A model generated the notes under the pieces. It ran no database searches and was not told where the DNA came from. It saw only the letters and a program-made list of their open reading frames with translations. DNA of 64,000 nt from Podarcis cretensis (taxonomy: Eukaryota), in assembly GCA_951804945.1 (NCBI GenBank), contig OX638151.1, positions 75,454,001 through 75,518,000 of the forward strand. Direction: 5' to 3'. The position numbers and the translations under genes are program-made. Below, piece by piece: positions 1 through 63,984 of the stretch. Position 1 is the stretch's first letter, and every line of letters starts with the position of its first letter.

Positions 1-2815
1 TTGGTGGGCTACCATAAATGGTGGGTAAGTTGTATTTCAGCATGGTCAGAAGTTGCATCATTGTGAATGAAACAGATATTTGAAGAATGCTTTGGGAAGG
101 TAAACAAGTCCATCAAGCAAATTAGTATACCGAATGCTATGAAGTAAATGACTGCCTTGACCCAGAACAGAATGACATTTCTTCAGATGGCCATACATTA
201 ATTTATACCAGATTTGTGGGTGTGTAGCCAATTAAGAAGGGGCCGGCATGACCTGGCTGATTATACATGGCATGCCTGCAACCAAATCTGGCACCATGCC
301 TGTGCACTTTGATCATCTCACTTTTCTCCTGGTGCCACACTGATGGAATTAGTGCAGGTGAGGGGATGGGCAAAGGCCAACTTATATTATCATTATGCAT
401 TAGTTCAAAATCTGCATTGCTAACAAACCACCATGTTAAATTACAGTTGTCTTGTTATGGTTAGTTCTTATATTAGGCCTCCCTGTATTGTTGCATGATT
501 CCAGGGATAGGCTTTAAAGTGACTTCCAACTGTGGCTGAACTTTGACTATTCACAGTTATTTTTCAAAAATCATTAACACAGTAAAACAAATGCTACTCT
601 TTCAATTTACTTCATTTACTTTTCTCTCTTGCTCTCACTCCCAATTGACTTTACCTGTTCTTAGAGTTGTCACCACACAGCCAGAGCTGATCGGCTGTAT
701 GATATCATCCTTTCATTACATGAATCCTGATTAGCTGGCTTCACCCATGTGACAATCTAGACCTGCTAGTCATGAAGAAGCTCTCTCTTCCTCCATCCTA
801 GTAACTTCCTTAAGCTTAGAGATGTAGGTTTCACTCTCTGTCCCCTTTCCAAAAGTGCTGGGTTTGAACAATATTGGTAACATAAGTTCTTCTGATTCGA
901 GCTAGACCTGTCAGTCACAATGAACCTCTTCTTCCACGCCATCTTCCCACTTTGGTGTTTTCTGTTACTTACCCCACCATCCCACCATGGTAAATTTAGA
1001 GGCATGACTTTATTTTTCAACAGATGCTTCTATGCAGCATTATTTTGATGTCTTGATCACCGAGGTGCCACAAATTACTTCAGGAATCTATGATTTGATG
1101 TGCCCACCTCATAGAAATCCTACTTCACCTGTGACCAGCCCCAGATACTTCAGAAGGCATCTCTCTTCACCTCAGGTTTTGCCCAAATCTGATGCATGTT
1201 GAAATTACATGTTGAAATTACATCTGATGATGACCGCTTCAGACAATGACCTGTTTGCTCAACCGTACTGTATTATCAAGCTCCAGAATCAATCATATTT
1301 GGTGGAAAGGTGGGAAACAGATTTAACAAAGGAACCACAAATAAATAATAAGCATAGTTTTCTCATCCAAAATGATCCTAGGCTGAAATCCTAACCATGG
1401 ACTCTTTTCTGGGGGTACATGGTAAGGCTCAACTGCACATCTCATAGTGGAACTGGGCTCGGTTTTGATTTAGATTATTTTACTTTGAAATTAGCTCACC
1501 TTTGCCAAATTGAAACAAGTGCTTAGCCAGGGATACAAAGTTTATGCAAGCTTGGAATGCATCTACCGGGGAGTAAATCTCATTGAACTCACTGGGACTT
1601 CTGAGCAGACATGTCTAGAATTAGGTGTTACAAAATGAATTGCCAAAAGTAGGATTGTGATTACACCATGATTATGTCTGGCAATTTAAAAATACAAAAC
1701 AATGAATTTCAGCTGTCAGACTGGGCTTATAAAACCTGGCACAGGTAAGCACTTTTGTCTGATACTGAAATTGTGAAACACTTAAGTAGCTGTCTATCCT
1801 GCTCACCAAAGAGCTAATTTGAGGTTATGTCGTATAAAAGTAGGAACAAGAGACCAAAGATTCCAGAACAGGAAAGTCAAATGATGTGGAAAGTTAATTA
1901 TATAACTTGCAGTTTCATAACTTGGATTGTGCTGGGTGGGAAATGGTTGTTTATGATTTATATGCTGCACTAGCAAGACTTTAGCTGAATCTTTTATTTT
2001 CTGTTCTGCTACTCCCTTGTATTCCCTTGGGAAAGAAAAGAAGCCATCAGTTCCCAAACAATGGCTTTGGAAATCACAGTACACCATCAAGTACCATTAT
2101 TTCCCAGGGACATTTGTGGTCCATTTTCAAGGTGCACAGCAGCACTGCACCCTAAAATGATAAGTAACAGTCATTTAATCAGAAAAGAATACACATACAG
2201 GAAAAAATATACAATATAACATTTTATATTGCTGAAAGTAAAGGAAGTATATAAAATAAACTATAAAAATAAAAATAAACACTATAGAGACTCTATCTCT
2301 TCCCTAAAATCATTCTGCTTTCTTCTTTCCCTTTGAAAGTTCCCATCATTTGGGCAGGATGTTGATTTTTTTGTGGGGTGGGGAGGAGAGATGATGTAAT
2401 TTAAGAGGGATTTACTTAGAGATGATTTGAGCTTTAATGATGAATGGGATAACTGATTGGCAGCAGGATCTGGGTAGAATATCAACAGATATAAAATAGT
2501 TGCAGAACTGATCTGGTTATTAATCTGGTGATCCGAAGAATGTATATGGTGTGATCTGTGTGGGTAATTAAGTAGATTTATTGAATGGAGAATTATTTTT
2601 AGGAGAAATTAATTGGATTGCATTCTGTAAAAAATTAAATTCTGGTAATTATTTCTGTATTTGCATATACATTAACATATGCAAATTTGTGCCATCATTT
2701 TCCTGTGATGCACCTAGCCAACCCCAAGCCCATGGGCCTTGAAAAATGTGGTGAATATTTCCCCAAATTTTCTCCCAAATTTGCGCCCTACATTGTCATA
2801 TTGCAGATAATGGTA

Positions 2816-2960
2816 AGGTAAAGGTAAAGGTACCCCTGCCCGTACGGGCCACTCTTGACAGACTCTGGGGTTGTGCGCCCATCTCACTTAAGAGGCCAGG
2901 GGCCAGCGCTGTCCGGAGACACTTCCGGGTCATGTGGCCAGTGTGACATCGCTGCTCTGG

Positions 2961-3003
<43 letters not shown>

Positions 3004-3209
3004 CGCACACGGAAACGCCGTTTACCTTCCCGCTGGTAAGCGGTCCCTATTTATCTACTTGCACCCGGAGGTGCTTTCGAACTGCTAGGTTGGCAGGCGC
3101 TGGGACCGAGCAGCGGGAGCGCACCCCGCCGCAGGGATTCGAACCGCCGACCTTTCGATCGGCAAGCCCTAGGCGCTGAGGCTTTAACCCACAGCGCCAC
3201 CTGCGTCCC
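2816..3209 (-). mobile_element. Sauria SINE, full-length, young subfamily
   Basis: On the minus strand: tRNA-like head GGGACGCAGGTGGCGCTGTGGG with B box GGTTCGAATCC, and an (ACCTTT)n tail. 13-bp TSD GCAGATAATGGTA at 2803-2815 and 3210-3222. Confidence 0.95.
2961..3002. repeat. (CCAGAG)7 hexanucleotide repeat inside the Sauria SINE
   Basis: Seven perfect CCAGAG units; source of the PEPEPE/ARARAR/LWLWLW ORFs. Confidence 0.97.
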
Positions 3210-4271
3210 GCAGATAATGGTATCTGGTTCAAAATGGTTTCGGGGAAGGTTGATAAAGGCAGTAAAGACCTGATTGCATGCATGATAGCACATTTCACAT
3301 CACACTGAAGTCAATATTCATCAGAGAGAAAACAACAGAGGAAGGCAAGGCAGGTTCTGCTGGGTTTGGGAGGAAATAAACTAGAGCTTTTTCCAAGCAG
3401 GCCAAGTAAAAGCAGATCCAGGAAAGGTAAGTCTCTCTCAGGAGGTCAGGACCCTGGTCAGCTCTCAGTGGGCCCTCTTGGCTGAGCTATGAAGGATATT
3501 ATCTCAGACAAGAACTGAAAGCATCTGAAGCCTTACCTCCTTGAGAGATTAGTTGTAGTGATTTGAAGAACCCTTGCCGGATTCTGCAGCTACTGATTCC
3601 TACACCGTGGAGGGGATAGGGATCTTACTGGGATTACATCTTCTGAGTCTGTAGAAGGCCAGATAATTTTGTCCTTACATTGGGAGGAACCAGGGGAAGG
3701 TGTTTTGAAAGTGTTTCTTACCTTCAATATTTCCTCTAGGTCTGCACCTTTCTCAGGTTAGTGTGAGGGGGCAGCTTTGGAAGTTATATCCAAAATAAAC
3801 AGGCAAGGTTTCCTGGCTGCACCTGGTGAATCACTCTTTACTACTAAATCCACCATCTAACTGGGAGAGAAAAGAGCCACAGCTCCTTCTCCATGTATGC
3901 CCTGCTCCTTTTCCTTGTCCCACCCTCTCCACCTACTGTAGTGATCACACCTTCTGGTATGTTGCCCAGGAAGTGATCAAAAATGCAGATGAAAGGATTG
4001 GTGGGGAATGCTTTGCTTCCTGCTTCGTTGGTGTTCTTAAACGTAACAAGTAAATCTCTGGATTGCAACCTGACAACCCTGCAATGATTTTATGTAATGC
4101 AGGACCAATCCCTTTGAATATTTTTTTTTAAAAAACTGTCTGTAGGAGAGGAGGAATGAAGGGGGTGTCCCTTTACAAACTGAAGGTTCAGTATTATTGT
4201 CATTAGCTCAAATGGACCAAAGCCGGGTGCCCCCCATTCTATATTTGTGCATCTGATTATTCCTGCCTCAG

Positions 4272-5168
4272 AATATAGAATGGGGGACACCTGGCTTGAC
4301 AGGAGAATATGTGAAAAAATCTAGGGGTCTTAGTAGACCGCAAGCTTAACATGAGTCAACAGTGTGTTGCAGCAGCAGCAAAAAATGCTAGTGTAATTCT
4401 AGACTGAATCAACAGCAGTATAGAGTCGAGATCAAGAGAAGTAATAGTACCACTCTATTCTGCCTGGGTGGGACGCAGGTGGCACTGTGGGTCAAAGCCT
4501 CAGCGCCTAGGACTTGCCGATCGAAAGGTCGGTGGTTCGAATCCCTGCGGCGGGGTGCGCTCCCGCTGCTCGGTCCCAGCGCCTGCCAACCTAGCAGTTC
4601 GAAAGCACCTCCGGGTGCAAGTAGATAAATAGGGACCGCTTACCAGCGGGAAGGTAAACGGCGTTTCCGTGTGTGGCTCTGGCTCGCCAGATGCAGCTTT
4701 GTCACGCTGGCCACGTGACCCGGAAGTGTCTCCGGACAGCGCTGGCCCCTGGCCTCTTAAGTGAGATGGGCGCACAACCCCAGAGTCTGTCAAGACTGGC
4801 CCGTACGGGCAGGGGTACCTTTACCTTTACCTTTATTCTGCCTGGGTGGGGTGTTAGGGGAGAGGTACTACCTTTTGTGGATATCTAAAGGGCTGTCATG
4901 TGGAAGATGGAGCAAGCTTGTTTTCTGTTTCTCCAGAGGGTAGGGCCCAAATCAATGGATTCAAATTACAAGAAAGGAGATTCCAACCAAACATTAGAAA
5001 TTACCTTTTGATGGTAAGAGCTGTTCATCCGTGGAATGGACTGCTTGGAAGGTCATGGACTGGAGGTTTTTAAACAGAGGTTGGATAGCCCAGCTGTGGT
5101 TCCTGCATCTCAGGGGGTTAGACCAGAGGACCCTTTGCATCCTTTCCAACTCTACAACTCTATGACTC
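4272..5168 (+). mobile_element. CR1 LINE 3' fragment, interrupted by a Sauria SINE
   Basis: Degenerate CR1 ORF2 C-terminus (RMGDTWL..CEKNLGVLVDRKLNMSQQC..SRSREVIVPLYSA; later NGFKLQERRF) and a CR1-type 3' end (CCAACTCTACAACTCTATGA). Confidence 0.85.
4470..4833 (+). mobile_element. Sauria SINE, full-length, young subfamily
   Basis: A/B-box head and (ACCTTT)n tail. TSD TATTCTGCCTGGGT at 4456-4469 and 4834-4847. Nearly identical to the copy at 34627-34985. Confidence 0.95.
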
Positions 5169-6416
5169 AATGCAAAAAAGAAAAGAAAAAATCCACCACC
5201 AAACGAACTGTGCAACAATAACTTCTAGAGCGTTTGCTTTCTTAAACAAATAGAAACAGGAAATATCTACTGCATTTCATTCCTGATTCACCCAAAGCAG
5301 GGGCACAACGGGGATTCATTGCACATGCACACGCACACCACCTACTAGTTTTGCAGAAGCCTCATTGAAATGAGTGGAGGATGCAGTGAAACAAGGGGAA
5401 TGACTGTATTGGATGAGACACCCTAACGAAAGCCTTTCCCTCCTTTCCCTTGTCTTCTTTTACCGCCTCCTCTAAGCTGTCTTTCGTGTGGCAGCCAAGC
5501 CCTTCCTCCTACAGAATAAGTTCACAAATACTTACATCACCCCTGACTATTTTCCTCTGATTGGATCTAAAGGAAATATTGCTGCACTTGGTATACTGTA
5601 ATTCCAAGTAATAATTGGGTATGTGACCCCATTTCCTGTATGCATATTTCCTAATCCCCAAGAGATCCAGTTTTCTATTGTGTTCCGTGTTAATGGGAGA
5701 AAGTACTTTGGATGTTGATATCAACTTGGAAGGAGCATATTCCTTCACTGGCTCAACAGATTCCGATTTAATGCTTTCAGTTGGGGGTGGAGGGAACAGA
5801 TGAGAAAAGTCCGCAACGATTGTTCAAGCTCTCCTGCAGACATTGACTTGTTTACACAGTAGCTTTATAGGCATGTCTGGTTGGCTACATGAATAAGTAT
5901 GGTTGCAACAGAGCCAAGGGTCTTTTCCAGATTATAATTTTCTTGCACAGCAAAGGCTTTGATATTGCTCACATGTCATCTCTCCAGGTAGCGTTTCTTT
6001 TCTGATTCACCCTGGATCACAAAAGGGCAATATGTTACTGCCAAGAAAATGATTCCTATCCCACAGGCAAGCACTCTTATTATTATAGTTTCTAAGCTGT
6101 CCCTTAAGAATATCCTCCATGAAAAACACCTCTTCTTTCAGTGTTTGTGTGTGTTACTGAGGGGAGAGGGAGCTGTGAACAGAGACAAAAGTGCTTACCT
6201 ATTAAGAGAGATGTCAGAGAACATTGCCCTCACTCTGATTTGGCTTTTTAATGTCACAATATAGCCAAATCAAATTAGTTATATTGCATTATGAAATAAT
6301 AATCCTAGCTATGTGATCCTTTCTTGCATAGGATGAAATCCTCTGGAAGAACGCTAGTTTAAAAATAGTACCAACGTAGCTGTGGAGAAAGGCAATGAAT
6401 TAAATTAAGGTGAAGT

Positions 6417-6452
6417 TGTGTGTGTGTGTGTGTGCGTGTGTGTGTGTGTGTG
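6417..6452. repeat. (TG)n microsatellite
   Basis: About 18 TG units with one CG interruption. Confidence 0.97.
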
Positions 6453-6958
6453 GCTTTTGAATGATATTTTGAGGGCTACAAAACTCATATTTTGCACTGA
6501 ATATGCTCATGCCTCCCACAGAATTTTTACATCCCCAATCATTTTTAATGCGATCAGTATGATGGTGGTTGCCAAAGTGTTGAAAGCACTTGCCACAGAT
6601 ATTAGGTCACAGACATAAATCTCATCTTTTCTGCCTACACAGTCTTGTGGTCATTTTGAGGACTTTTGGATATGAGCTGCTGTTCCAAGTATGCAGCTCT
6701 CTCAAAACAAGCCTAGGTTGCCTCCTCACTTGAGCCTTTAGTGTTGCTGCGTTATTATTTCTTTGTAGTTAGTTGGAAGCGCACTGAAAATGGTGGTTCC
6801 TTACATCACTTAATAGAGCACTTTATTATCCAGCAATGTCTTTACCTGTTGACTTCTATACTGTTACTTTTTACACAGAACTAAAAAGGTATCTTCCAAT
6901 GCTAACTGAAAGTCTCACATTTGCAGGCACATCCTGGTTTATTTCCTTTGATTCAGGT

Positions 6959-8537
6959 CGGGTGGCGGGATTCAAATTAAACAAACAGAAAACTAAAGTG
7001 CTGGGGAAAAATTTGACAGATACAGAGTCAGAACGGTTTCAGAGAGAGACAGAACTAACTGTGGTTAAAAAAGTAAAGTACCTAGGGGTAAACATAACAG
7101 CAAAAAATCTGAGTCTTTTTAAGGATAATTATGAAAAAATGTTGGTCAGAAATTAAGAGAGACTTAGATAGTTGGACAAAATTGAAACTTTCTTTGTTAG
7201 GCCGAATTGCTGCTATCAAGATGAATGTATTGCCAAAAATGTTGTTTTTGTTTCAAACATTACAGATTGTGGACAAGACGGAGTGCTTCCGGAAGTGGCA
7301 GAGAGATATTTCTAAGTTTGTCTGGCAGGGCAAAAAGCCAAGAATCAAGTATAAGATATTAACTGATGCGAAAGAAAGAGGGGGCTTTGCCCTGCCAGAC
7401 CTAAAGTTGTACCATGAGGCCGCAGCTTTCTGCTGGCTAAAAGATTGGCTACTTCTCGAGGACACTGATGTATTGGATCTGGAAGGTTTTAACAATGCTT
7501 TTGGTTGGCATGCATATTTATGGTATGACAAGGTTAAGATCAATAAGGCCTTTAAGAACCATATTGTCAGAAAAGCAGTGTTTAATGTCTGGACAAAATA
7601 CAAAGACTTACTGGAAAATAAAACTCCAAGGTGGCTTTCACCGCTGGAAGCTAAGGCCCGAAAAAGACCCAATATGGAGGCCAAATGGCCAAAATATTGG
7701 GAAATATTAGAAAAAGATGGAGACAATTGGAAATTGCAGAGTTTGGAGAAAATTAAGGACAAAGTGCGAGACTGGTTACATTACGCTCAGATTAATGAAG
7801 TTTTTAAAAACGACAAAAAGTTAGGGTTCCGGGTGGAGAAATCGAAATTGGAAACAGAACTGTTAGAACCTAAGACTAAGATACTTTCAAGAATGTACAA
7901 CCTGCTGTTAAAATGGAATACACAAGATGAAATGGTTAAATCGGCTATGATAAAATGGGCACAGGACATTGGGCACAACATTATGTTTGAGGACTGGGAA
8001 GGGTTGTGGACCATTGGGTTGAACTTCACTGCATGTAATGCTTTGAAGGAAAATGTAATGAAAATGATATATAGATGGTACATGACCCCAGTTAAACTTG
8101 CCAAAATATACCATTTGTCTGATAACAAATGTTGGAAATGTAAAGAAAGTGAAGGAACATTCTTTCACCTCTGGTGGACTTGCCCTAGAGTGAAGGCTTT
8201 CTGGGAAATGATATATAATGAGCTGAAAAAGGTATTTAAGTATACCTTCACTAAGAAACCAGAGGCCTTCCTTTTGGGTATTGTCGACCAGGAGGTGTTA
8301 AAGAAGGACCGAACATTTTTTATGTATGCAACAACAGCAGCAAGGATACTTATCGCTAAGCATTGGAAAACCCAAGATCTACCCACACTGGAAGAGTGGC
8401 AGATGCAGCTGATAGACTATATGGAACTAGCCGAGATGACTGGCAGAATCCGAGACCTGGGAGAAGAGAAGGTTGAAGAAGACTGGAAGAAATTTAAGAT
8501 TTATTTTAAAAAGTATTGTAATTTGGTTGAATGTTAA
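6959..8537 (+). pseudogene. L1 ORF2 fragment (end of RT, C-terminal domain with CCHC knuckle)
   Basis: VAGFKLNKQKTK..VKYLGV, then LSLLGRIAAIKMNVLPK, GGFALPDLKLY and CWKCKESEGTFFHLWWTC. One +1 frameshift in an A-run at ~7134-7139; otherwise open (468-aa ORF 7131-8537). Confidence 0.93.
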
Positions 8538-8836
8538 GAAGGATGCTAGATCATAAATAATTGACCACCATTAAATTAGATGGAATTAGGATGATAAGTA
8601 GATTGAGGAGAATATAAACCACTTGGAGAACAATTAGATTATGTTTAAAAGAATGGGACCTAAGAATTTAAATAAGATGATAATTTGCTGGTTAAAATTT
8701 AAGACGATGTAAGTGGGAGCGGGAGATGTGAGGAAGTCCAAAGAGGTTTTGAAAATATGTTATGATATATGCTATATTGTTGACTATTTTTGCATTTGTA
8801 TTCAAAAAATCTTAATAAATATTTATAAAAAAAAAA
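6959..8836 (+). mobile_element. L1 (LINE-1) insertion, 5'-truncated
   Basis: 19-bp TSD TATTTCCTTTGATTCAGGT at 6940-6958 and 8837-8855. AATAAA at 8814, poly(A) at 8827-8836, ORF2 C-terminal half. Confidence 0.95.
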
Positions 8837-8914
8837 TATTTCCTTTGATTCAGGTGAGGATTAAGATGTATTATTACATATAGATGTATTATAGATGTAA
8901 TTATTATTACATCT

Positions 8915-9094
8915 ATAGCCCATCTTTTATATCCTCCAAGTAACCCAAGGTGGCATACGTGGTTCTTCCCCTCCCCATTTTATCTTCACAAAAAAAAATC
9001 CTGGGAGGTAGACTAGGCTGAGAGATATCGTGATTGGCCCTAGATATCTCCCAGGCCCTAGTACAGCACTCTAACCCCTATAGCGCACTGGCTC
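8915..9094 (-). mobile_element. MIR/Ther1-type CORE-SINE (Squam3-like), decayed
   Basis: CORE-like CCCCATTTTATCTTCAC..GGGAGGTAGACTAGGCTGAGAG and a tRNA-like end CACTCTAACCCCTATAGCGCACTGGCTC. Confidence 0.65.
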
Positions 9095-13360: not shown

Positions 13361-13752
13361 GTAAAAAGGTAAAATGTAAAGGACCCCTGGATGGTTAAGT
13401 CCAGTCGAATTTGACTATGGAGATGTGCAGCACTCATCTCTGCTTTCAGGTCGAAGAAGCCGGTGTTTGACCGCAGATGGCTTTTCTGGGTCATGTGGCC
13501 AGCAAGACTAAACTGCTTCTGGCACATGGAACACCGTGATGGAAGCCAGAGCGCACAGAAATGCCATTTACCTTCCCGCTGCAGTGGTACCTATTTATCT
13601 ACTCACACTGGCATGCTTTCGAACTGCTAGGTTGGCAGAAGCTGGGACAGAGCAATGGGAGCTCACCCTGTTGTGCGGATTTGAATCGCTGACCTTCTGA
13701 TCGGCAAGCCCAAGAGGTTCAGTGGTTTAGACCACAGTGCCACCCGTGTCCC
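13361..13752 (-). mobile_element. Sauria SINE, old subfamily
   Basis: Diverged full-length copy; TSD TATTCTTAGC(A/G)G at 13349-13360 and 13754-13765. Confidence 0.9.
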
Positions 13753-19916: not shown

Positions 19917-20253
19917 GGTGCGGGTTAAACCACAGAGCCTAGGACTTGCCGATCAGAAGGTTGGCAATCCCTGCGACGGGGTGAGCTCCTGCTGTTTGGT
20001 CCCAGCTCCTGCCAACCTAGCAGTTCGAAAGCACGTCAAAGTGCAAGTAGATAAATAGGTACCGCTCCGGCGGGAAGGTAAACAGCATTTCCGTGCGCTG
20101 CTCTGGTTCGCCAGAAGCAGCTTAGTCATGCTGGCCACATGACCCGGAAGCTGTACGCCGGCTCCCTCAGCCAATAAAGCAAGATGAGCGCCGCAACCCC
20201 AGAGTCGGCCACGACTGAACCTAATGGTCAGGGGTCCCTTTACCTTTACCTTT
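19917..20253 (+). mobile_element. Sauria SINE, intermediate-age subfamily, slightly 5'-truncated
   Basis: Sauria body, 3' AGAGTCGGCCACGACT hairpin and (ACCTTT)n tail. Confidence 0.92.
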
Positions 20254-21179
20254 AAAGAAATGGAAAGCAAAAGAACCCACATAGATCAGCGTGAACTGAC
20301 AAGCCTGATAATAAGTCAATATATGTGGGGTAGCTGAAAGCTCCTTCTTCCCTTCCTTTCTTCCTTTGCCATGAAGAACATGGGGTTCATTAATTTAGTG
20401 TGCCTGGAGCAATCTGTGTGAAAATTATTAATTTTAAATAACATTTTTTTCCTCCTCAGAGCATGCATTTTAAGGAGAATCATGATTTATTTATTTTTTT
20501 GAGCCGAGAACTGTGTTGGTACATTCAGAAAGTGCAAACATTAGTAGATAGGTAAGTTTTGATCTGCACATTATACTGGGATATATAGATCAGATCAGTC
20601 TGTATCAGAATTCACAAAGATTTATTTACTTAAGCATCCTGCAGAGCTGCTGGAACTTTTCAGAGCGGGCTGACGTCTCCACTCAAAGGCGGCCTTACCA
20701 AATGCACTCGAAACACTTGCCACCCTTTAAGGATGGAACTCCATGTGTGGCATTGTCTACATGTGTTGTGAATTCGCAACGTGCAGTTTTCACATCTGCA
20801 CTGTGATACAGATGCAGCAGCTACAGCCATGTGATGCCTTAGTGCACAGACATGTGTTATGATAGCAAACACATGGGCACCAATGACAAGGATCCCTGGC
20901 TCTACGCCCTTTGCTCCGGCAACCAGCCAAGAGGATAAAATACTGCTCAGGCCTGTAAAATTCTGGGTGGGTGGCAACCCTCGTGACAAGGCAGAGAAAC
21001 CTCCTGGGAGAAACTGGCAGTGTAGAAAGTGAAACTGGTGAGATACAGTTTCAGTGGAAGTGTATATGTGCCATATTCAGATTACTTAAAATACTTAAGG
21101 AACAAGGGTCACCTGCGTAGAGTTAGGGGCTACTGCACACTTTCCTCCATTGGTAATATCATATGTCCTAGGCCAGGTC

Positions 21180-32919: not shown

Positions 32920-33178
32920 CTTAATGGCCAGGATGGTGTGGCTGCTTTGAAGATCAGGGAGGTGGTGTGCTGGGAGGGGGTGTTTAACCCTTTCCTCCCA
33001 TATCCTTTTCCTGGTCTAAATTGCACCCCCACCCCCACCAGCTGCAATTAGTTTGGGATGGAGGGTGGCCTAACTTCTCTTTTTGCCCCTTTGGATGATT
33101 GAGGAGAGAAGGGTTAAATGCCCTCTCCCAGAGTGCCAATTACCCACCCTTCAAAGCAACTGCACAGAGCCACTAATT
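32920..33178. mobile_element. Old palindromic MITE-like element
   Basis: Inverted blocks TGCTTTGAAG / CTTCAAAGCA and GGGAGGGGGTGTTTAACCCTT / AAGGGTTAAATGCCCTCTCCC. Confidence 0.55.
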
Positions 33179-34316
33179 AGTTAAAAGCAAATTGCCACTT
33201 TCCTGTGTCATGTCTAAGCTTGCCCAGAAAGCTATCATTGGGGTTCATGAGCAAAACCAAGAGGGTGGCCCTGCACCCTGTCAAACAGAGAAAAGTCCTC
33301 TGTTTGAAGGGACACCATCTCTTGGAAGATATTCTGTATTGGGTTGTCCATTTCAAGGTAAGGAATCAAAACAAGGCAGAGCAAAGGCTTTGAGCTTTCT
33401 CATCAACAGTTAACGCATGGACAGTATCCTGACCAGACACAAAATCTTCTTCGCTAAGGTCAGACGTATTGCATTTCTATGTAAATTGTAGTAATTTACA
33501 TCTATACATATAAATGGTCATATTTACCCAGGTCGGTGTCCTCTTTTCTGGCAATGTGTAAGTATTCAGACCAGGTCAAAGGGCTTTTCAGGCTTCTGTT
33601 AGCCTGTAGCTGTGCCTCTGAATCTCACTATATTCATAGGTCCTGTTTGTCTAGCCTGGCCGCCTGATTTTTCCCGGGTTCTAATATTGATATGAATATC
33701 TCTTAACTCCATAGCTAACTTCATCTGCAAGAACAATTCTTAGGCACAGCAGGCCAACATTATGACTGGACTCGCCTTCTGTTCTCTGAACACGCTCACC
33801 ACACTCTCTTTTAGTTTTACCGCTGCTGTTGTTGTTCTCTGCTTGGCTTTCACTTTTCTCAGCTCTGTTTGTTTGTTTGTTTTTTGTTTTGTTTTTTATA
33901 AAATTTTTATTAGGTTTTCACATTTTATAAAACAAAAACAAAAACAAAAACAAAACATATATATTTTTAAACTCTTATTTTCATTACCCCCTTTCCCTGA
34001 CTTCCCCCCACCCCCTCTTCATACATCCCAATTCCAAAAATTAGTTCCACAAGTTCTTATCTCCCATCTTTAACATATTATTGTTATTTTTAAACTTAAT
34101 CCTTTTTACTTATCCAAATTTAATTTATCCAATTCTCTTTTAAACATTAAATCTTTTTTTTTCTAAGGTCGACCTAATTACCCTTCCACGAATTTCTCCC
34201 TTTGTATTTTTGTTAATTATATGTCATAATGGCCAAATACAAAAATCATAAAATTTTGAAATTCTGTTCTCCCCTCCCTCCCTACCCCAGTTTCCATCCC
34301 TTCCCAAGCAATTATC

Positions 34317-35260
34317 CTAGCCCGGATTCCTCACATCAGAGGCCTTCAAGTCTCTGTCAGTCTCTCTCTGCCGATTTTGTTGGTAGCCCTTTTTGTTGGT
34401 CCTCAGGTCTCGAAGGAATTCTATCTCAGTCACATCATATTTTCTTCCATCCAAGATACTTAATAGCAGTTGCTGCAAAAAGTCAGTTGATCTCCCATAC
34501 TCAAGGAGGAAGTCCCAATCATATTTCTTTACTCTTTTGAATTCCAATATTCCAAGTGCTCCCGGGACTTCCTCCTTCATCTTTCTCATCTTTCGCAGAT
34601 TTGTAATCCAAAGATCTTCTTCTTTAAGGTAAAGGTAAAGGTACCCCTGCCCGTACGGGCCAGTCTTGACAGACTCTGGGGTTGTGCGCCCATCTCACTT
34701 AAGAGGCCAGGGGCCAGCGCTGTCCGGAGACACTTCCGGGTCACGTGGCCAGCGTGACAAAGCTGCATCTGGCGAGCCAGAGCCACACACGGAAACGCCG
34801 TTTACCTTCCCGCTGGTAAGCGGTCCCTATTTATCTACTTGCACCCGGAGGTGCTTTCGAACTGCTAGGTTGGCAGGCGCTGGGACCGAGCAGCGGGAGC
34901 GCACCCCGCCGCAGGGATTCGAACCGCCGACCTTTCAATCGGCAAGTCCTAGGCGCTGAGGCTTTAACCCACAGCGCCACCTGTGTCTTCTTCTTTATTT
35001 CCTGACAATATGGGCATCTGATTGATATTTTCCTGCACTTTTTCCATTCCTTCTTTTCTCTCCACCGGTTCCAAAAAAGTTTTTTCTGGTTCAGCTGCAG
35101 ATTCCTTATCAGGCAAATCCTTTATGCATTCAGCAGAGTCGTTTGTTTTGGAATTCAAGGTCATAAGTTCTTTGTTCATAGCCGTACTCTGCTCTTGCAG
35201 GATTCCCACGAGAAAAAACATTCTTTCTATCTCTACCAGTAATTTTCCCTCTGCAGCCAT
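34317..35260 (-). pseudogene. 190-aa ORF of the L1-like element (possible ORF1p derivative), disrupted by a SINE insertion
   Basis: Removing the SINE plus one TSD copy (34615-34985) joins track ORFs 34964..35317 and 34317..34589 in frame with no stop (..SGNKEED|LWITNLRKMRK..). The ATG at 35260 is in ACAATGG context. Confidence 0.75.
34627..34985 (-). mobile_element. Sauria SINE, young subfamily
   Basis: 12-bp TSD TCTTCTTCTTTA at 34615-34626 and 34986-34997; near-identical to 4470-4833. Confidence 0.95.
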
Positions 35261-36537
35261 TGTAATGTCTCTAGTTCCCCCTAGGGGGATTACAGTTGCT
35301 TGATAGTCCTTTTCCAACAGCCCGTTACTTTGTTGTTTATGACTACGTTGTTTCCAGCCACCTCAGTTCAAAAGCAACACTTTTAGTTCAGAAAGTTATT
35401 AAATAACAAAGTTCTTAAATTTTAGCCGCCCGTTTGACAGCTCCTTTGACAGCTGTCAAACTCCTTGTTCTTTTTCCTCCGGCTCACACACAGGACGCTC
35501 CCGGGTTCGGGAGGGGGCGGGTTTACACAAAAGCTTCCAAAACTCCTCACTTTCTCTCCAGCACAAAGACTTCTTCTGTCAAACTCATGGAAATATTTTT
35601 TATCTAACACCAAAAACAGTACTCTCCACCTTAGTCCACCGATCCTTGCTTTAGATCGTTTGTAGATAGGGGGGTGCAGACTTCCCTTTAGCACATCCCC
35701 CGGTTGTACCGAATTCAAAGATATAGATTTTAAAGTCCAAATTCCTTTCTACTCACGGGTTATTTGTTTCCAGTCCGAATTTTGGGGAAAAAGTCAGCGC
35801 TGTCCGGCCATGGCACGCGGCTTCGCTCCACTGAAGTAGCGGTCTACTCTCAGCACCACGCCACCCCCCGTACCCTCTCTGTAGCCTTTAAAAAGGCTCT
35901 TCGTGGGTCAGGGAAGGCGCTTAAAGGTGCCCACCGAGTCACCAAGTCCGCAGGCTTCCGCGCCTGCGGTTTCTGAGGGTCCCCGCGTTATTTGTTTGTT
36001 GTTTGTTTTGTTTTATGCTCCTTTATCAAGCGTGGAGTTGTTTTTGAAACCCTTTGAAGTTTCCCTAGCGAACAAAGTGTTTGCCTCCCCAATGCAGACA
36101 TTGTTTGCATTAAAAGTTCAAAACCAACTGACATCAACAGCAGATGAAAATGGTTACCATCTGACAGCTGCAGGGAGGAGGGGGTGGGCCTTAAAAAAAC
36201 AATTAAAGTCCCCATGCGTGGCAGGGACAGAAAAGCGTGCTTTGGAAGGAACTGAAGAAGAAGAAGAAAAAGTCAAGGTCTACAGTATTCGTTGCCTGTG
36301 ATATGAATCGGATGTGAACAAGTTGGACTTCAGGCTGCTTCCCATGCACATGGCAAAGGACACAGATTAAGCCTTCACATTATGTAGGGAATGGCTGTAT
36401 CCCAGGGCTGTATCCCAGGGGCCATATTGGCTGGGGCTGATGGAGGCCAATGATATCTGGAGAGCCACAGGTCAAACTCACCTGGTTTCCATGCAGAAGA
36501 CCTTCCCAAGGTCAGTCCTTAGCATCGTCCCCTGAAA

Positions 36538-36663
36538 CAAGGGTAGTTAACCTGTTGCTTTCCAAATGTTGCTGGACTCCAGTTCCCAGCCAGCATGGCC
36601 AATGGTCAGAGAAAATGTCAGATGCAGTCTAAGATCTGGAGGGTCATGCATTCCCCATCCCTG
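36538..36663. mobile_element. ~135-bp palindromic hAT-like MITE
   Basis: CAAGGGTAGTTAACCTG..ATCTGGAGGGTCATGCATTCCCCATCCCTG. Confidence 0.65.
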
Positions 36664-36679
36664 GCTAAAAGAATCAAAT

Positions 36680-36803
36680 AGTTGGTGGTGAGAACAACCT
36701 CCACCTGAGATGAGACCCTGGGAGCCACTGAAATCAGCATAGAGAAGACTGGGCTAGATAGACCAATGAGTTAACTCAGAATAAGAAAGTTTTATGTATT
36801 CAT
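36680..36803 (+). mobile_element. Old tRNA-SINE 3' half with a CR1-like tail
   Basis: CCTGAGATGAGACCCTGGGAGCCACTG..GGGCTAGATAGACCAATG..TTTTATGTATTCAT. Confidence 0.5.
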
Positions 36804-37065
36804 ATCTTCCCCTGCTATGCCCAAAACTTCTACAGGTGGAAGCCCAGTTCACACTGATGGCTGTATGCATGGGAAGGAAAGTGTTTGAGCCCCAGACTTA
36901 GTTGCACTCCCCATTGCATATGCAACCTACAAATCAGCTTTTTCTCTCTGCCAAAATCTTAGTCTCCCCCTTTTTTGCTGCTACAGTAACACAGGTATAT
37001 GTTTCACAAGTATGAAGCTTTCCTTGCCATGTCCCAGGAGCATCTTTCAAAACTGAAGGTGAGTA

Positions 37066-43541: not shown

Positions 43542-43908
43542 AAGGTAAAGCTAAAGGTACCCCTGCCCGTACGGGCCAGTCTTGACAGACTCTGGAGTTG
43601 TGCGCCCATCTCACTTAAGAGGCCAGGGGCCAGCGCTGTCCGGAGACACTTCCGGGTCACGTGGCCAGCGTGACGAAGCTGCTCTGGCAAGCTGGCACCA
43701 GCGCAGCACACGGAAACACCGTTTACCTTCCCGCTAGAAAGCGATCCCTATTTATCTACTTGCACCCGGAGGTGCTTTCGAACTGCTAGGTGGGCAGGAG
43801 CTGGGATCGCAGACGGGAGCTCACCCCGCCGCGGGGATTCGAACCGCCAACCATGCAATCGGCAAGCCCTAGGTGCTGAGGATTTACCCACAGCGCCACC
43901 CGCATCCC
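43542..43908 (-). mobile_element. Sauria SINE, full-length
   Basis: 12-bp TSD GATCCAGTAGTA at 43530-43541 and 43909-43920. Confidence 0.95.
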
Positions 43909-44442: not shown

Positions 44443-45324
44443 TTATTGTCCCCCTGCTTATTTAACTTATATGCAGAATTAATCATGCGAAAGGCTGGGC
44501 TGGATGAATCCCAAGCCGGAATTAAGATCGCCGGAAGAAATATCAACAACCTCAGATATGCAGATGACACAACCTTGATGGCAGAAAGTGAGGAGGAATT
44601 AAAGAACCTCTTAATGAGGGTGAAAGAGGAGAGCACAAAATGTGATCTGAAGCTCAACATCAAAAAAACGAAGATCATGGCCACTGGGCCCATCGCCTCC
44701 TGGCAAATAGAAGGGGAAGAAATGGAGGCAGTGAGAGATTTTACTTTCTTGGGCTCCTTGATCACTGCAGATGGTGACAGCAGTCACGAAATTAAAAGAC
44801 GCCTGCTCCTTGGGAGAAAAGCGATGGGAAACCTAGACAGCATCTTAAAAAGCAGAGACATCACCTTACCAATAAAGGTCCGTATAGTTAAAGCCATGGT
44901 TTTCCCAGGAGTGATGTATGGAAGTGAGAGCTGGACCATAGAGAAGGCTGATCGCTGAAGAATTGATGCTTTTGAATTATGGTGCTGGAGGAGACTCTTG
45001 AGAGTCCCATGGACTGCAAGAAGATCAAACATATCCATTCTTAGGGAAATCAGCCCTGAGTGCTCACTGGAAGGACAGATCCTGAAGCTGAGGCTCCAAT
45101 ACTTTGGCCACCTCATGAGAAGAGAAGACTCCCTGGAAAAGACCCTGATGCTGGGAAAGATGGAGGGCACAAGGAGAATGGGACGACAGAGGACAAGATG
45201 GTTGGACAGTGTTCTCGAAGCTACCAACATGAGTCTGACCAAACTGCGGGAGGCAGTGGAAGACAGGAGTGCCTGGCGTGCTCTGGTCCATGGGGTCACG
45301 AAGAGTCGGACACGACTAAGCGAC

Positions 45325-54824: not shown

Positions 54825-55328
54825 AAAGTCTCTTAGCCAGGGTCACTTTTATGATATCGCCACCTGGCTGGGAGAAAAATGTCTTGGGAGAGAGCTATGT
54901 GGGGATTTCTGAACTTTTCACATCCACACTTCCTTTGTGGTTGTAGCAGATCCAGACTGAAACACAGAGATCTGCCACAATCACATCTATTTTACCAGTC
55001 CTTGAAGGGAGGTTGATAAAGTTTAGCAGTAGCGGCTGGTGAGGCAGCACAGGTGGGCCTCCATTGCTCTCCTGGCTTCCCAACATAGCAGATCACTGGC
55101 ACTTGCTGAGAAGGGAGGGATGAGGCATGGGGAACTCAATGATGCGCCACCGTTGGAGCTAAATGAGACTCACAATTTGGATTTGATTATACTGAGGCAT
55201 ATTGCAGGTGTGTTTGTATTGGCTCATGTCACAGAATGAGGAAGGAGGAGGTAGAAATCTAAAGGATAAGCCAGCACACTAAGACAGCAGTCCCTGAAAC
55301 AATTTAAAGTGGTGTCTTTGAATAACTA

Positions 55329-55660
55329 CAGGTGACACTGTGGGTTAAACCACAGAGCCTAGGACTTGCCGATCAGAAGGTTGGCAGTTCGAATCCCCGC
55401 AACGGGGTGAGCTCCCGTTGCTCAGTCCCTGCTCCTGCCAACCTAGCAGTTTGAAAGCACGTCAAAGTGCAAGAAGGCGGGAAGGTAAACGGCGTTTCCG
55501 TGCACTGCTCTGGTTCTCCAGAAGCGGCTTAGTCATGCTGGCCACATGACCCGGAAGCTGTACGCCAGCTCCCTCGGCCAATAAAGCGAGATGAGTGCCG
55601 CAACCCCAGAGTCAGTCACGACTGGACCTAATAGTCAGGGGTCCCTTTACCTTTACCTTT
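55329..55660 (+). mobile_element. Sauria SINE, intermediate-age subfamily, with an internal deletion
   Basis: Same subfamily as 19917-20253; lacks the TAGATAAATAGGTACCGCT segment. Confidence 0.92.
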
Positions 55661-55683
55661 AATCTTCTATACGTTTTGTATGT

Positions 55684-56060
55684 GGGACGCAGGTGGCGCT
55701 GTGGGTTAAAGCCTCAGCGCCTAGGGCTTGCCGATCGAAAGGTCGGCGGTTCGAATCCCTGCAGCGGGGTGCGCTCCCGCTGCTTGGTCCCAGCGCCTGC
55801 CAACCTAGCAGTTCGAAAGCACCTCCGGGTGCAAGTAGATAAATAGGGACCGCTTACCAGCGGGAAGGTAAACGGCGTTTCCGTGTGCGGCTCTGGCTCT
55901 GGCTCTGGCTCTGGCCAGAGCAGCGATGTCACGCTGGCCACGTGACCCGGAAGTGTCTCCGGACAGCGCTGGCCCCTGGCCTCTTAAGTGAGATGGGCGC
56001 ACAACCCCAGAGTCTGTCAAGACTGGCCCGTACGGGCAGGGGTACCTTTACCTTTACCTT
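55684..56060 (+). mobile_element. Sauria SINE, young subfamily with (CTCTGG)4
   Basis: Full-length; flanking GTTTTGTAT at 55673-55681 and 56066-56074; same subfamily as 2816-3209. Confidence 0.95.
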
Positions 56061-60378: not shown

Positions 60379-60509
60379 TATAAAAATTTGCAGATGCCTC
60401 TTTCCCAACTCCATTCATCTTTCTTTGCAAATTGCCTCTACTCCTTCCTCTTTGGAACAGACAATAGGGCTCCCAGAGAGGGAAGAAAAAGAGGAGAGCT
60501 TGCTATCTG

Positions 60510-61676
60510 TTTTTTTTATATATATATATAATAATATTTATTAAAGTTTCCAAAAAAAGTTACAAGAATAAGAACAGAAAAAGGAAAAAGAAACAAAAAA
60601 TACAAAATACAAAAAAGTAAAAACAATTAAAAACAAGTCAACCTTTCAATGCCTTAACTTTCATTTGCTTGTTTCCCTGACCTCCTCACACCTCCCTTTT
60701 TTGTATTCTAGTTCAATTAATTATTTCAGCAAATCCTTTCCATTTTTACTTTTATCTTACTAATTTATCTTAATATGTTATAACTTTACATTCTCATCTG
60801 TTAATAATCCATCTTTAAATACTCCTTTACAACATTACTACTAAAACCACATATCTTCATTCCAACATCCATCTAACATTCCTTAATTTTACAATATTTC
60901 TGTAAATAGTCTTTAAATTTCTTCCAATCTTCTTCTACCGACTCTTCTCCCTGGTCTCGGATTCTGCCAGTCATTTCCGCCAGCTCCATGAACTCCATCA
61001 CCTTCATCTGCCATTCTTCCTGGGTGGGTAAATCTTGTGTCTTCCAATACTTTGCAATGAGTATTCTTGCTGCTGTTGTGGCACACATGAAAAAAGTTCT
61101 ATCCTTCTTTGACACCAATTGGCCGACTATGCCCAGGAGAAAGGCCTCTGGTTTCTTCTGGAAGGTATATTTAAATACCTTTTTCATTTCGTTATAGATC
61201 ATCTCCCAGAAAGCCTTGATCCTTGGGCACGTCCACCAAAGGTGAAAGAATGTACCTTCAGTTTCTTTACATTTCCAACATTTATTATCAGGCAAATGAT
61301 ATATTTTTGCGAGCTTGACTGGTGTCATTTTCATAATATTCTCTCTTAAGGCATTACATGCCGTAAACTTCATACCTGTGGTCCATAACTGTTCCCAGTC
61401 AGCCAGCATAATGTTGTGTCCCACATCTTGTGCCCATTTTATCATAGCAGATTTCACCATTTCGTCCTGAGTATTCCATTTCAACAGCAAGTTATACATT
61501 CTTGACAGAGTCTTAGTTTTGGGATCTAACAGTTAAGTTTCCAATTTTGATTTTTCCACCTGGAAGCCAATTTTCTTGTCCAATTTGTATGCCTCCATTA
61601 TTTGATAATAGTGAAGCCAGTCTCGCACTTTGTCTTTTAGTTTTTCAAAGCTCTGCAATTTTCAATTTATCTCCCT
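60510..61676 (-). mobile_element. L1 insertion, 5'-truncated (ORF2 C-terminus 60873-61499)
   Basis: 16-bp TSD GAGAGCTTGCTATCTG at 60494-60509 and 61677-61692; CWKCKETEGTFFHLWWTC knuckle; AATAAA followed by a (TA)n/poly(A) tail. Confidence 0.95.
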
Positions 61677-62271: not shown

Positions 62272-63984
62272 AACAATAATAATTTATTATTTATACCCCG
62301 CCCATCTGGCTGGGTTTCCCCAGCCACTCTGGGCAGCTTCCAACAAAATATTAAAATACAATAGGCTATTAAACATTAAAAGCTTCCCTAAACAGGGCTG
62401 CCTTCAGATGTCTTCTAAAAGTCTGGTAGTTGTTTTTCTCTTTGACATCTGGTGGGAGGGCATTCCACAGGGCGGGTGCCACTATTGAGAAGGCCCTCTG
62501 CCTGGTTCCCTGTAACTTGACTTCTCTCAGTGAGGGAACTGCCAGAAGGCCCTTAGTGCAGGACCTCAGTGTCCGGGCAGAATGATGGGGGTGGAGATGC
62601 TCCTTCAGGTATACTGGACCATGGCCATTTAGGGCTTTAAAGGTCAGCACCAAAACTTTGAATAGTGCCCGGAAATGTATTGGGAACCAATGTAGGTCTT
62701 TCAAGACCAGTGTTATGTGGTCTCAGTGTCCACTCCCAGTCACCAGTCTAGCTGCCGGATTCTGGCTTAATTGTAGTTTCCGGGTCACCTTCAAAGGTAG
62801 CCCCACATAAAGCGCATTGCAGTAGTCCAAGCGAGAGATAACCAGAGCATGCACCACTCTGGCGAGACAGTCCGCGGGCAGATAGGGTCTCAGCCTGCGT
62901 AGCAGATGGAGCTGATAAACAGCTGCCCTGGACACAGAATTAACCTGTGCCTCCATGGACAGCTGTGAGTCCAGAATGACTCCCAGGCTGCGCACCTGGT
63001 CCTTCAGGGGCACAGTTACCCCATTCAGGACCAGGGAATCCTCCACACCTGCCCGCCTCCTGTCCCCCCAAAACAGTACTTCTGTCTTGTCAGGATTCAA
63101 CCTCAATCTGTTAGCTGCCATCCATCCTCCAATCACCTCTAGACACTCACACAGGAACTTCACTGGTTCTGATTTGAAAGAGAGGTAGAGCTGGGTATCA
63201 TCCCCGCATACTGATGAACACCCAGCCCAAACCCCCTGATGATCTCTCCCAGTGGCTGCATGTAGATGTTGAAAAGCATGGGGGAGAGGACAGAACCCTG
63301 AGGCACCCCACAAGTGAGAGCCCAGGGGTCTGAACACTCATCCCCTACCACCACTTTCTGAACACGGCCTAGGAGGAAGGAGCGGAACCACTGCATAACA
63401 GTGCCCCTAGCTCCCAGCCCCTCTAGATGGTCCAGAAGGATGTTATGGTTGATGGTGTCAAAAGCCGCTGAGAGATCCAGCAGAACTAGGAAACAGCTCT
63501 CACCTTTGTCTCTAGCCAAATCATCGACCAGTGCGACCAAGGCAGTTTCAGTCCCAAGATGAGACCAGTGCGACCAAGGCAGTTTCAGTCCCAAGATGAG
63601 GCCTGAATCCCGAATGGAAGGGATCCAAATGGTCCACTTTTTCCAGGTGTGCAAGAAGCACCAGGGGAGAGACAGCTGACAGACTCAGTGTCTTTAGAAA
63701 GCATTCCAGACCCCCCCTCCTCCCAGAACCCCGGTGGGCATTGAAAGTAGGAGAACAGAAAGCTCAGAGGCAGAAAGCACAGATCAGCCAGCACAGGGAT
63801 GGTGTATAATAGGAGAGACGGAGGGGGTGGGGCTTTACTCGGAGCAACGCAATTACTGAAATAGAGGCACCTTCCTAAGCCTCTCTCTGTGAATATTGAA
63901 TCAAAGACTTGGTAAGAACTCTTCTTGTTTATCTGATTCTTGGCGGCCCACCATGGGAGGGATCAGATTCACTGAAGCCTGACA
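62117..63984 (+). mobile_element. Solo LTR (Gypsy-like, ~440 bp) split by an L2 insertion
   Basis: 5-bp TSD GCAAG at 62112-62116 and 63985-63989; termini AGTCAG (inferred T>A change) and CCTGACA; the halves join as GAGCAGGAA|GAAGCACC. Confidence 0.8.
62229..63652 (-). mobile_element. L2 LINE 3' fragment with most of the RT domain
   Basis: HLDPFHSGFR, TETALVALVDDL, LLDLSAAFDTINH, GVPQGSVLSPMLFNIY; YADD broken by a 2-nt insertion; (TTG)n tail; highly similar to 49831-50803. Confidence 0.96.

Follow-up and report, generated by a model that had tools for sequence, protein, structure and literature searches.

On the minus strand of the window, the 64,000-nt stretch of DNA analysed here, which contains no N, positions 33867-35986 are confirmed to be one retroposed unit. 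This unit is probably a young, full-length copy of a protein-coding, non-autonomous retroposon family, which relies for its copying on L1 enzymes from other elements. Without the SINE that interrupts it, the unit is 1.75 kb long. Its parts, listed from 5' to 3', are:

35987-36014, minus strand: target-site duplication, 5' copy, AAAACAAAACAAACAACAAACAAATAAC; it is preceded by CAT, so that the target reads T/AAAA
35261-35986, minus strand: leader (5' UTR) of 726 nt, the first ~290 nt of which are CpG-rich
34986-35260, minus strand: N-terminal frame piece, codons 1-92, with a heptad-repeat helix (residues ~3-39) and an acidic linker
34615-34985, minus strand: tRNA-derived, Sauria-type SINE in sense orientation (34626-34985), with the second copy of its 11-nt duplication (34615-34625)
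34317-34614, minus strand: C-terminal frame piece, codons 93-190 and the stop codon TAG (34317-34319), with a conserved KKYDW motif and the family-invariant end RDLKASDVRNPG
33896-34316, minus strand: 3' UTR, with AATAAA at 33906-33911 and the terminal motif TAATAAAAATTTTATAAAAAA
33866-33895, minus strand: short A-tail running into the 3' copy of the target-site duplication

The hallmarks of L1-type insertion are present in the unit: a target-site duplication, a polyadenylation signal, an A-tail and a T/AAAA-like target. The flanking duplications (36014-35987 and ~33895-33866) are A-rich and ~28 nt long, the 5' copy and the 3' tail sharing a 27-nt match at 92.6%. Because the A-rich tail fuses with the duplication, the true poly(A) is very short; the 3' UTR with its AATAAA and the A-rich tail together amount to 450 nt. 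None of the frames inside the unit (the two frame pieces and five others) matches an endonuclease or reverse transcriptase in Pfam. An earlier sequence-only reading of this DNA had described a CpG-rich leader of ~725 nt, a 3' UTR of ~420 nt with AATAAA and an A-rich tail, and the lack of both enzymes, all of which the present analysis bears out.

The leader contains 31 CpG dinucleotides (observed/expected 0.75) and is richest at its 5' end, where the ratio reaches 0.94 in the first 287 nt (35700-35986) as opposed to 0.26 for the whole window. There are three upstream ATGs. The last leader codons, IPLGGTRDIT, are kept in relatives of the element, and P0006-P0008 begin 12 codons upstream with MAIPLGGTSDIT. 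The predicted RNA fold of the first 250 nt is unremarkable (z = -1.6), and scans of 33000-37000 for Rfam families and tRNAs found nothing.

The SINE, 360 nt long, contains a B box (GGTTCGAATCC) as well as a tail of (ACCTTT)n, and the 11-nt duplication AAAGAAGAAGA bounds it at 34986-34996 and 34615-34625. Seven other copies of the same SINE are found in the window with identities of 74-99%, the closest being that at 4476-4833 (98.9%). Its insertion cuts the protein to 92 codons followed by six foreign ones, the truncated frame ending in ...KEEDTGGAVG. The two frame pieces were searched separately, rather than as a joined sequence: window:34985-35260:- (92 codons, ending in ...SGNKEED) and window:34317-34613:- (98 codons and a stop, starting with LWITNLRK). 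Both match a profile built from outside proteins only, at positions 1-94 (E 3e-39) and 88-194 (E 4e-46). The matches are colinear and abutting, and the pieces therefore constitute one frame of 190 codons, as had been proposed for the two open reading frames on either side of the SINE. The start codon at 35260 has the strong context that had been ascribed to it, with A at -3 and G at +4. In other copies the frame is uninterrupted: X5 record 26 (depth 290) is SINE-less and joins 34625 to 35128 by 137 letters, 131 being expected without the SINE. The frame of the present copy was split by a later SINE insertion, and this copy is thus unable to make the protein.

The element belongs to a multi-copy family that is very abundant in lizards. 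When contigs of three lizard species were aligned to the window at a likeness of at least 80%, their summed depth over the element was 10 to ~4000 times that over its flanks, these depths of aligned contigs not being copy numbers. For X1, the summed depth amounts to 37,000-427,000 over the element outside the SINE and to ~50-240 in most flank bins; for X5 the figures are 1,500-22,500 and ~15, and for X12 89-9,000 and ~12. The summed depth peaks at 35742-35963, in the leader. Single variant sites are covered by up to 66 different contigs. The junctions between leader and frame and between frame and 3' UTR are conserved in P0006-P0008, P0012 and P0013. X15 contigs, which are only guessed to be RNA, are ~85% alike. 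A metagenome scan for DNA of other copies gave 167 pattern matches, 0 of which were confirmed. The pile-up in three species, together with the homologous proteins described below, upholds the multi-copy, protein-coding family without reverse transcriptase that had been put forward at the outset.

In X5 record 24, from organism B, a mere 38 nt separate 33859 from 36017, and the flanks of this record differ from those of the window in 1 of ~570 letters (~0.2%). This record is the empty site in a near-identical relative. The junction of flank and element is present in X1 with zero differences. The present copy is a true insertion, young and full-length. The absence of ORF2 from this copy is the only observation that would favour an origin of the unit at this locus by a single internal deletion within a full L1, an event to which we assign practically no probability. 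The sequence-only reading had named a single-copy structure as a finding that would refute its half-L1 proposal; instead, the whole length of the element is covered by many distinct contigs, the two frame pieces are joined in other copies, and full-length homologous proteins exist elsewhere. Moreover, the locus is empty in a close relative, and the unit must therefore have arrived as it is. The contig multiplicity and the empty site refute the one-off deletion.

Protein searches found 17 relatives, all unnamed and from Logan assemblies, of which 15 are full-length and two are fragments. In the word search, relatives were found with the N-terminal piece, and nothing with the C-terminal piece. 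The full-length proteins have 171-215 aa and a pairwise identity of 21-94% (median 39%). Start, stop and the C-terminal ASD..PG end are common to all 15, which differ in length by in-frame indels only and keep the heptad pattern and the terminal motif. The fraction of residues agreeing with the majority is 0.65 and 0.73 at the two ends, compared with 0.41-0.49 in the middle of the protein. The conserved C-terminal tail reads KDYQQNRxRGTERDLxASDVRNPG. The linker that follows the N-terminal helix is acidic and evolves fast. Fourteen of the 15 proteins are acidic to neutral, with a pI of 4.5-6.4 in 13.

The 21 best-supported variant sites in the frame include 18 that change an amino acid and one that makes a stop, and no purifying selection is visible in this small, selected sample. 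The 18 non-synonymous sites would be expected if the frame were unused and the element a long non-coding passenger of L1, made up of leader and 3' UTR, with the frames found in databases being those of the youngest copies. The upstream ATGs and a low-confidence fold model (see below) point the same way, and databases that hold called frames only would favour intact copies. This explanation is nevertheless unlikely. Start, stop, heptads and terminal motif are retained in 15 full-length proteins down to 21% identity; such retention, with in-frame indels only, across divergent proteins presupposes a frame that stayed open throughout the master lineages. The conservation is also uneven along the protein, a pattern that uniform drift would not give.

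Heptads with a clean a/d pattern mark the N-terminus, for which a parallel homotrimeric coiled coil is predicted. The model of the homologous region, residues 1-60 of P0001 in three copies, scored 0.62, as against 0.01 for the best of three controls; the pass mark was at least 0.32 and 0.20 above every control. In the calibration, which used two copies and not three, 21 of 30 solved homomeric pairs passed and 0 of 23 solved single chains. The three trimer runs had a contact agreement of at least 95% and a partner pLDDT of 80, with contacts that were parallel and in register at positions 7, 11, 14, 18, 21, 28, 32 and 35. The heptad-like character that had been noticed in the N-terminus agrees with both the residue pattern and the trimer model. 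The AlphaFold2 monomer model, made from 11 sequences, had a pLDDT of 41, which was too poor for a fold search.

The predicted parallel trimer resembles the stalk of ORF1p, and the 3' UTR is L1-like. Both would be accounted for if the frame were a cut-down L1 ORF1, in which an internal deletion had taken the RRM, the core of the C-terminal domain and all of ORF2 but spared the beginning of ORF1, with its coiled coil, and the final residues of that frame. Such an origin, a sub-case of the explanation preferred here, deserves serious consideration, although we incline slightly against it. Transposase_22 and its companion Pfam models (trimer, dsRBD) were unmatched at E up to 10 by the window pieces and 12 relatives. 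A profile search should pick up any ORF1p that has the 40-residue start or the 30-residue end in common with the family, yet L1 ORF1p was absent from a search of 1.84 billion proteins, in which none of the 11 matches exceeded 215 aa. A profile search of solved structures gave matches only at E above 1, and no match to human ORF1p. L1 ORF1p is a basic protein, whereas the proteins of this family are mostly acidic. The sequence-only reading was right on two further points: the protein falls well short of an ORF1p in length, and an RRM cannot be recognised in it. The family profile found no match in the six-frame translation of the window beyond the two frame pieces, and it therefore has no similarity to the L1 ORF2 tails there.

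In Pfam, both frame pieces, 12 relatives and the five other frames of the unit gave chance-level matches only; those to Parathyroid, FAM192A N-terminal, TraI_C and other models were dismissed, as all were below the cut-off. The ESM Atlas returned weak leads, scoring below 0.9 and to be taken as leads only: the whole protein pointed to retrotransposon gag families, and the C-terminal half gave none.

A further possibility, less likely than not, is that the ~190-aa protein is an undescribed kind of retroelement product, in which a minimal trimeric coiled coil is joined by an acidic linker to a conserved tail and whose kinship with ORF1p is absent or unrecognisable. Such a protein could give a non-autonomous element a way to commandeer L1 particles, for instance through incorporation into the ORF1p trimers of a helper or through binding to ORF2p, and may have been kept through deep divergence and been very recently active in lacertid-type lizards.

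The link to L1 is made through the 3' UTR, which is colinear with two real L1 3' UTRs in the window, at 60505-60872 and 8538-8840; the frame upstream of 8538 matches residues 788-1223 of human L1 ORF2p (E 1e-27). The local scores against these two copies are 411-456, compared with 138 +/- 43 for a genomic null in which 1 of 1411 segments scored as high, and these scores support the L1-type 3' UTR that had been recognised by the sequence-only reading. The identity to the L1 copies is ~55-60%, and against block-shuffled controls under strict scoring the result lies only ~2 sd above the mean. The element and both L1 copies have the terminal motif TAATAAA(T/A)ATTT(T)ATAAAAAA in common. The 3' UTR of the element also contains a (TGTTTT)n tract and two G-rich, G-quadruplex-capable tracts (~34270-34290 and 33988-34018). 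The T-rich tract upstream of AATAAA is consistent with lizard L1 3' UTRs as published (PMC5381506). The window holds no full-length L1 or L1 5' end, and the comparison with L1 within it concerns the 3' UTR only. As the protein has no homology to L1 ORF1p or ORF2p, the argument for L1 descent consists of the 3' UTR and the insertion hallmarks.

A protein without retroelement homology, and an mRNA-like layout of CpG-rich leader, Kozak ATG, one frame and AATAAA, might also be found in a processed retrocopy of a host mRNA that had become a highly productive source gene and had never belonged to an L1. This origin is highly improbable. No parent protein of any length was matched, the only matches being unnamed Logan proteins of 171-215 aa and two fragments; the abundance is very high in several species; and the 3' UTR resembles those of L1.

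Other features are shared with the L1 elements of Anolis (PMC5381506): an A-rich sense strand, a CpG-rich start of the 5' UTR, a T-rich repeat in the 3' UTR, and a terminal AATAAA and A-tail. In contrast, the Anolis L1 5' termini GACTTCCGGTGN8ATGGCG and GGGNGCTGCGCATGC (PMC5381506) are absent, by eye, from the 5' end of the element, where only a loose GGACTTGGTGAC can be seen, 40 nt inside. In Anolis L1, G-rich tracts are seldom found in the 3' UTR (PMC5381506), whereas the element has two.

For an element copied in trans by L1, as preferred here, transcription would start in the CpG-rich leader and polyadenylation would occur at AATAAA. ORF2p from an autonomous L1 would then copy the RNA into new sites by target-primed reverse transcription. 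The protein of the element may help its own RNA to reach the L1 machinery, one possible route being that its coiled coil lets it assemble together with the ORF1p of a helper; it is probably not a basic RNA chaperone like ORF1p.

The closest parallel in design is HAL1, the half-L1 of mammals (Smit 1999; Bao and Jurka 2010, as cited in PMC5753468), which likewise is a non-autonomous retroposon of L1 type, has one frame between a leader and an L1-like 3' UTR, and occurs in many copies. Both lack ORF2 and both are presumably mobilised in trans. However, HAL1 encodes a recognisable ORF1p. The lizard protein reaches only about half that length, matches neither the RRM nor the C-terminal domain, and is acidic in most family members. 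The analogy with HAL1 that had been drawn initially thus stands as one of design, while its second part, the keeping of ORF1, is unproven, given the lack of a Transposase_22 match and the acidic composition. HAL1 has been reported only in mammals in the literature examined, whereas the present family is one of lizards; no paper on a lizard half-L1 was found in the literature searched. With L1 ORF1p itself the lizard protein shares the N-terminal heptad helix, the predicted parallel homotrimer and its position as the first frame of an L1-type unit, but it lacks the basic RNA-binding core, and its stalk has only ~4-6 heptads. According to PMC5605252, truncated ORF1 proteins, which are likewise short products of L1-type units, arise in humans at retrotransposition-incompetent L1 loci and can suppress L1 in trans. 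There the short form is the product of defective loci; in lizards it is the conserved product of a successful family.

In the literature examined, coding non-autonomous derivatives of L1 are reported for mammals only, where they have a normal ORF1p. The lizard family is abundant and recently active, and its much smaller, acidic protein has kept no more than a helix of the trimer type and a short conserved tail. Neither the units nor their frames bear a name in the protein collections that were searched, and SINE insertions conceal some of them, which is of consequence for annotation. If the protein is needed for mobility, it would show the minimum that a parasite of L1 must encode, and would provide a natural tool for asking how RNAs obtain access to ORF2p in trans. 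If it instead interferes with L1, it would be a natural dominant inhibitor.

The element occupies positions 33867-35986 of the minus strand, and its coding frame is interrupted by a SINE. Its parts are as follows.

5' end at 35986, minus strand: leader of 726 nt with a GC- and CpG-rich start
35260, minus strand: start codon ATG, with A at -3 and G at +4
From 35260, minus strand: N-terminal frame piece, 92 codons, ending ...SGNKEED
34626-34985, minus strand, same orientation as the frame: tRNA-derived SINE of 360 nt with a B box and an (ACCTTT)n tail
From 34613 (LWITNLRK), minus strand: C-terminal frame piece, 98 codons, with TAG at 34317-34319
33906-33911, minus strand: AATAAA of the 3' UTR, which also has two G-rich tracts and a (TGTTTT)n tract

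Reading of the minus strand confirms the split coding unit and the anatomy proposed in the sequence-only reading. As had also been claimed there, the unit has no endonuclease or reverse transcriptase (RT): none of its frames matches either in Pfam. The observed/expected ratio of CpG is 0.94 at 35700-35986 and 0.75 over the whole 726-nt leader, compared to 0.26 in the window. An 11-nt duplication, AAAGAAGAAGA, lies on both sides of the frame-splitting SINE. The short A-run after AATAAA merges into an A-rich repeat that recurs at 35987-36014, just upstream of the unit. This pair is a target-site duplication of ~28 nt at a CAT/AAAA site.

With the two frame pieces queried separately, the N-terminal one retrieved two unnamed proteins (194 and 188 amino acids). 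A second search, using one of these as the query, found nine proteins, and 1.84 billion representatives searched by profile gave eleven clusters and no protein longer than 215 residues. In all, the searches yielded 17 proteins (P0001-P0017), every one of them nameless and derived from Logan assemblies. A profile made from nine of these, with the window pieces excluded, matches the window twice, its positions 1-94 corresponding to the first piece (E 3e-39) and 88-194 to the second (E 4e-46), with no further match in the six-frame translation of the window. The colinearity of the two matches shows that the SINE splits one frame, as had been suggested for the two ORFs beside it, and that this frame is colinear with a family of 171-215 residue proteins. 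P0006-P0008 and P0012 begin 12 codons upstream with MAIPLGGTSDIT, equal to the last leader codons of the element, and P0013, a late-frameshifted copy, reads into a G-rich 3' UTR start homologous to the one here. Both frame/UTR junctions are thus features of the family. P0017 resembles P0014 over the first ~85 residues only and diverges thereafter, probably also due to a frameshift.

Contigs of four public runs from lizards (X1 from organism A, X5 from B, X12 and X15 from F) were placed on 33300-36600 at 80% likeness. Summed depth, which according to the tool is not a copy number, was ~50-240 in most flank bins of X1 versus 37,000-427,000 over the leader, both frame pieces and the 3' UTR, ~15 versus 1,500-22,500 in X5, and ~12 versus 89-9,000 in X12. 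Single variant sites are covered by up to 66 different contigs, showing that many diverged copies exist. The X1 flanks and the flank/element 5' junction have no differences from the window. In X5, record 24 covers 33300-33859 and 36017-36599 with only 38 letters between them and one difference per ~570-letter flank. Record 24 thus represents the empty site of a very close relative, making the insertion recent or still polymorphic. In record 26 of X5 (depth 290), 34625 and 35128 are connected by 137 letters, 131 being expected for a SINE-less copy. X5 also has, at high depth, segments that differ from the leader at 1 position in 202 and from the 3' UTR at 4 in 229. The sequence-only reading had named a single-copy structure as the finding that would speak against it; the placed contigs show the element to be multi-copy. 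Taken together, the contig and junction results rule out a one-off internal deletion as well as a single-copy retrogene.

Summed depth over the opening ~250 nt of the leader (35742-35963) exceeds that of the frame or 3' UTR in all four runs, the reverse of the usual LINE 5' truncation gradient; a different and more abundant family, for example the helper L1, may have this leader start in common with the element. Flank bins 33411-33521 and 36408-36600 have a summed depth raised 8-fold to more than 100-fold; the unique flanks contain small repeats. X15, guessed to be RNA, has contigs ~85% alike over 35084-35986 (leader and frame start), one of them crossing the ATG. Such coverage would be compatible with transcribed family members; the type of run is a guess, and DNA carry-over is possible.

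The frame-splitting SINE has seven further copies in the window.

4476-4833, 55690-56060, 2814-3203, 43542-43900, 19919-20259, 55328-55662 and 13484-13748: SINE copies, 74-99% identity

The closest is 98.9% identical to that inside the frame, indicating very recent SINE activity; the SINE in the frame is real and young. Summed contig depth over the SINE is in the millions. Because of this insertion, the copy at 33867-35986 is dead for coding.

Two L1 copies of one family are present in the window.

6790-8840, plus strand: 5'-truncated L1 with an RT end (frame 6788-7153), ORF2 tail and 3' UTR ending CTTAATAAATATTTATAAAAAAAAAA
60505-61499, minus strand: second 5'-truncated L1 with a 208-aa ORF2 tail containing CWKCKETEGTFFHLWWTCP

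The 468-aa frame 7131-8537 (plus strand) matches residues 788-1223 of human L1 ORF2p (E 1e-27), and it shares a CWKC...HLWWTCP motif with frame 60873-61499 (minus strand). The best window matches of the element's 3' UTR are the 3' UTRs of these two copies, that at 60505-61499 being the top one, scoring 411-456, whereas 1,411 segments drawn at random from the window gave a null of 138 +/- 43. A single one of these segments had such a score, namely the other L1. The three 3' UTRs have a common block order: ATGTTTAAAAGA, a G-rich block ending GGAAGTC(A/C), a T-rich tract, and TAATAAA(T/A)ATTT(T)ATAAAAAA. Identity between the element and the L1 copies is only ~55-60% here, and with strict scoring the similarity exceeds block-shuffled controls by ~2 sd. 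We take this to indicate kinship with a different L1 family, short of proving parentage. The T-rich tract, AATAAA and A-tail match published lizard L1 3' UTRs, whereas the published 5' termini of Anolis L1 are not seen at the element (PMC5381506). The L1-like 3' UTR and the long target-site duplication (T/AAAA) make mobilization by L1 ORF2p in trans the best-supported candidate mechanism. Other RT frames, at 62369-63654 (minus strand; RVT_1 E 5e-17) and 44446-44958 (plus strand; 2e-11), belong to other, non-L1-looking LINEs, frame 62369-62704 having an LHWFPI...FKALNG type tail.

The 15 full-length proteins are 21-94% identical in pairs (median 39%). Invariant residues are M1, a G-x-L-Q in the first helix, one lysine of a KKYDW motif and a terminal ASD..PG. 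Conservation is 0.65 and 0.73 at the two ends versus 0.41-0.49 between them, and all indels are in-frame. Residues 7, 11, 14, 18, 21, 25, 28, 32 and 35 occupy the a/d positions of a heptad pattern. When three copies of P0001 residues 1-60 were modeled as a complex, the score was 0.62 and the highest among three controls 0.01, the pass mark being at least 0.32 and 0.20 above every control. In calibration, which used two copies rather than three, 21 of 30 homomeric-pair proteins passed and none of 23 single-chain proteins. At least 95% of contacts recur between runs; they are parallel and in register, and the partner pLDDT is 80. The model supports self-association of the first 60 residues. Modeling of the monomer gave a poor result (pLDDT 41).

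Of 21 best-supported variant sites inside the frame, a small, selected sample from placed contigs, 18 change the amino acid, mostly shifting this copy toward the family consensus (e.g. M82K, P50T, V9A). Purifying selection is not seen in this sample, which points to rapid evolution of the protein or to decaying copies. A metagenome scan yielded no DNA of relatives. That the frame is simply not used is improbable, however, as the 15 full-length members, some only about one-fifth identical, have the start, stop and reading frame in common, along with the heptad pattern and the terminal motif. An open frame was thus needed all along the master lineages.

Descent of the frame from ORF1 is somewhat less probable than not, and no sequence test here backs it. 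The predicted coiled coil and the lack of an RNA-binding core are confirmed. The comparison with Transposase_22, for which the sequence-only reading had called, gave no match: neither this nor its companion models, nor any other Pfam entry, matches any family member at E up to 10. Solved structures likewise have no match to any member, and a search of the ESM Atlas gave only gag-type protein leads, below the level that counts. L1 ORF1p is basic, whereas 13 of the 15 members have a pI of 4.5-6.4 (the others 7.7 and 10.2). In the literature consulted, half-L1 elements have been described only in mammals, with a normal ORF1p (PMC5753468). Apart from the frame as ORF1, the proposed likeness to HAL1 in design holds, and the evidence supports a protein-coding, non-autonomous, L1-dependent family.
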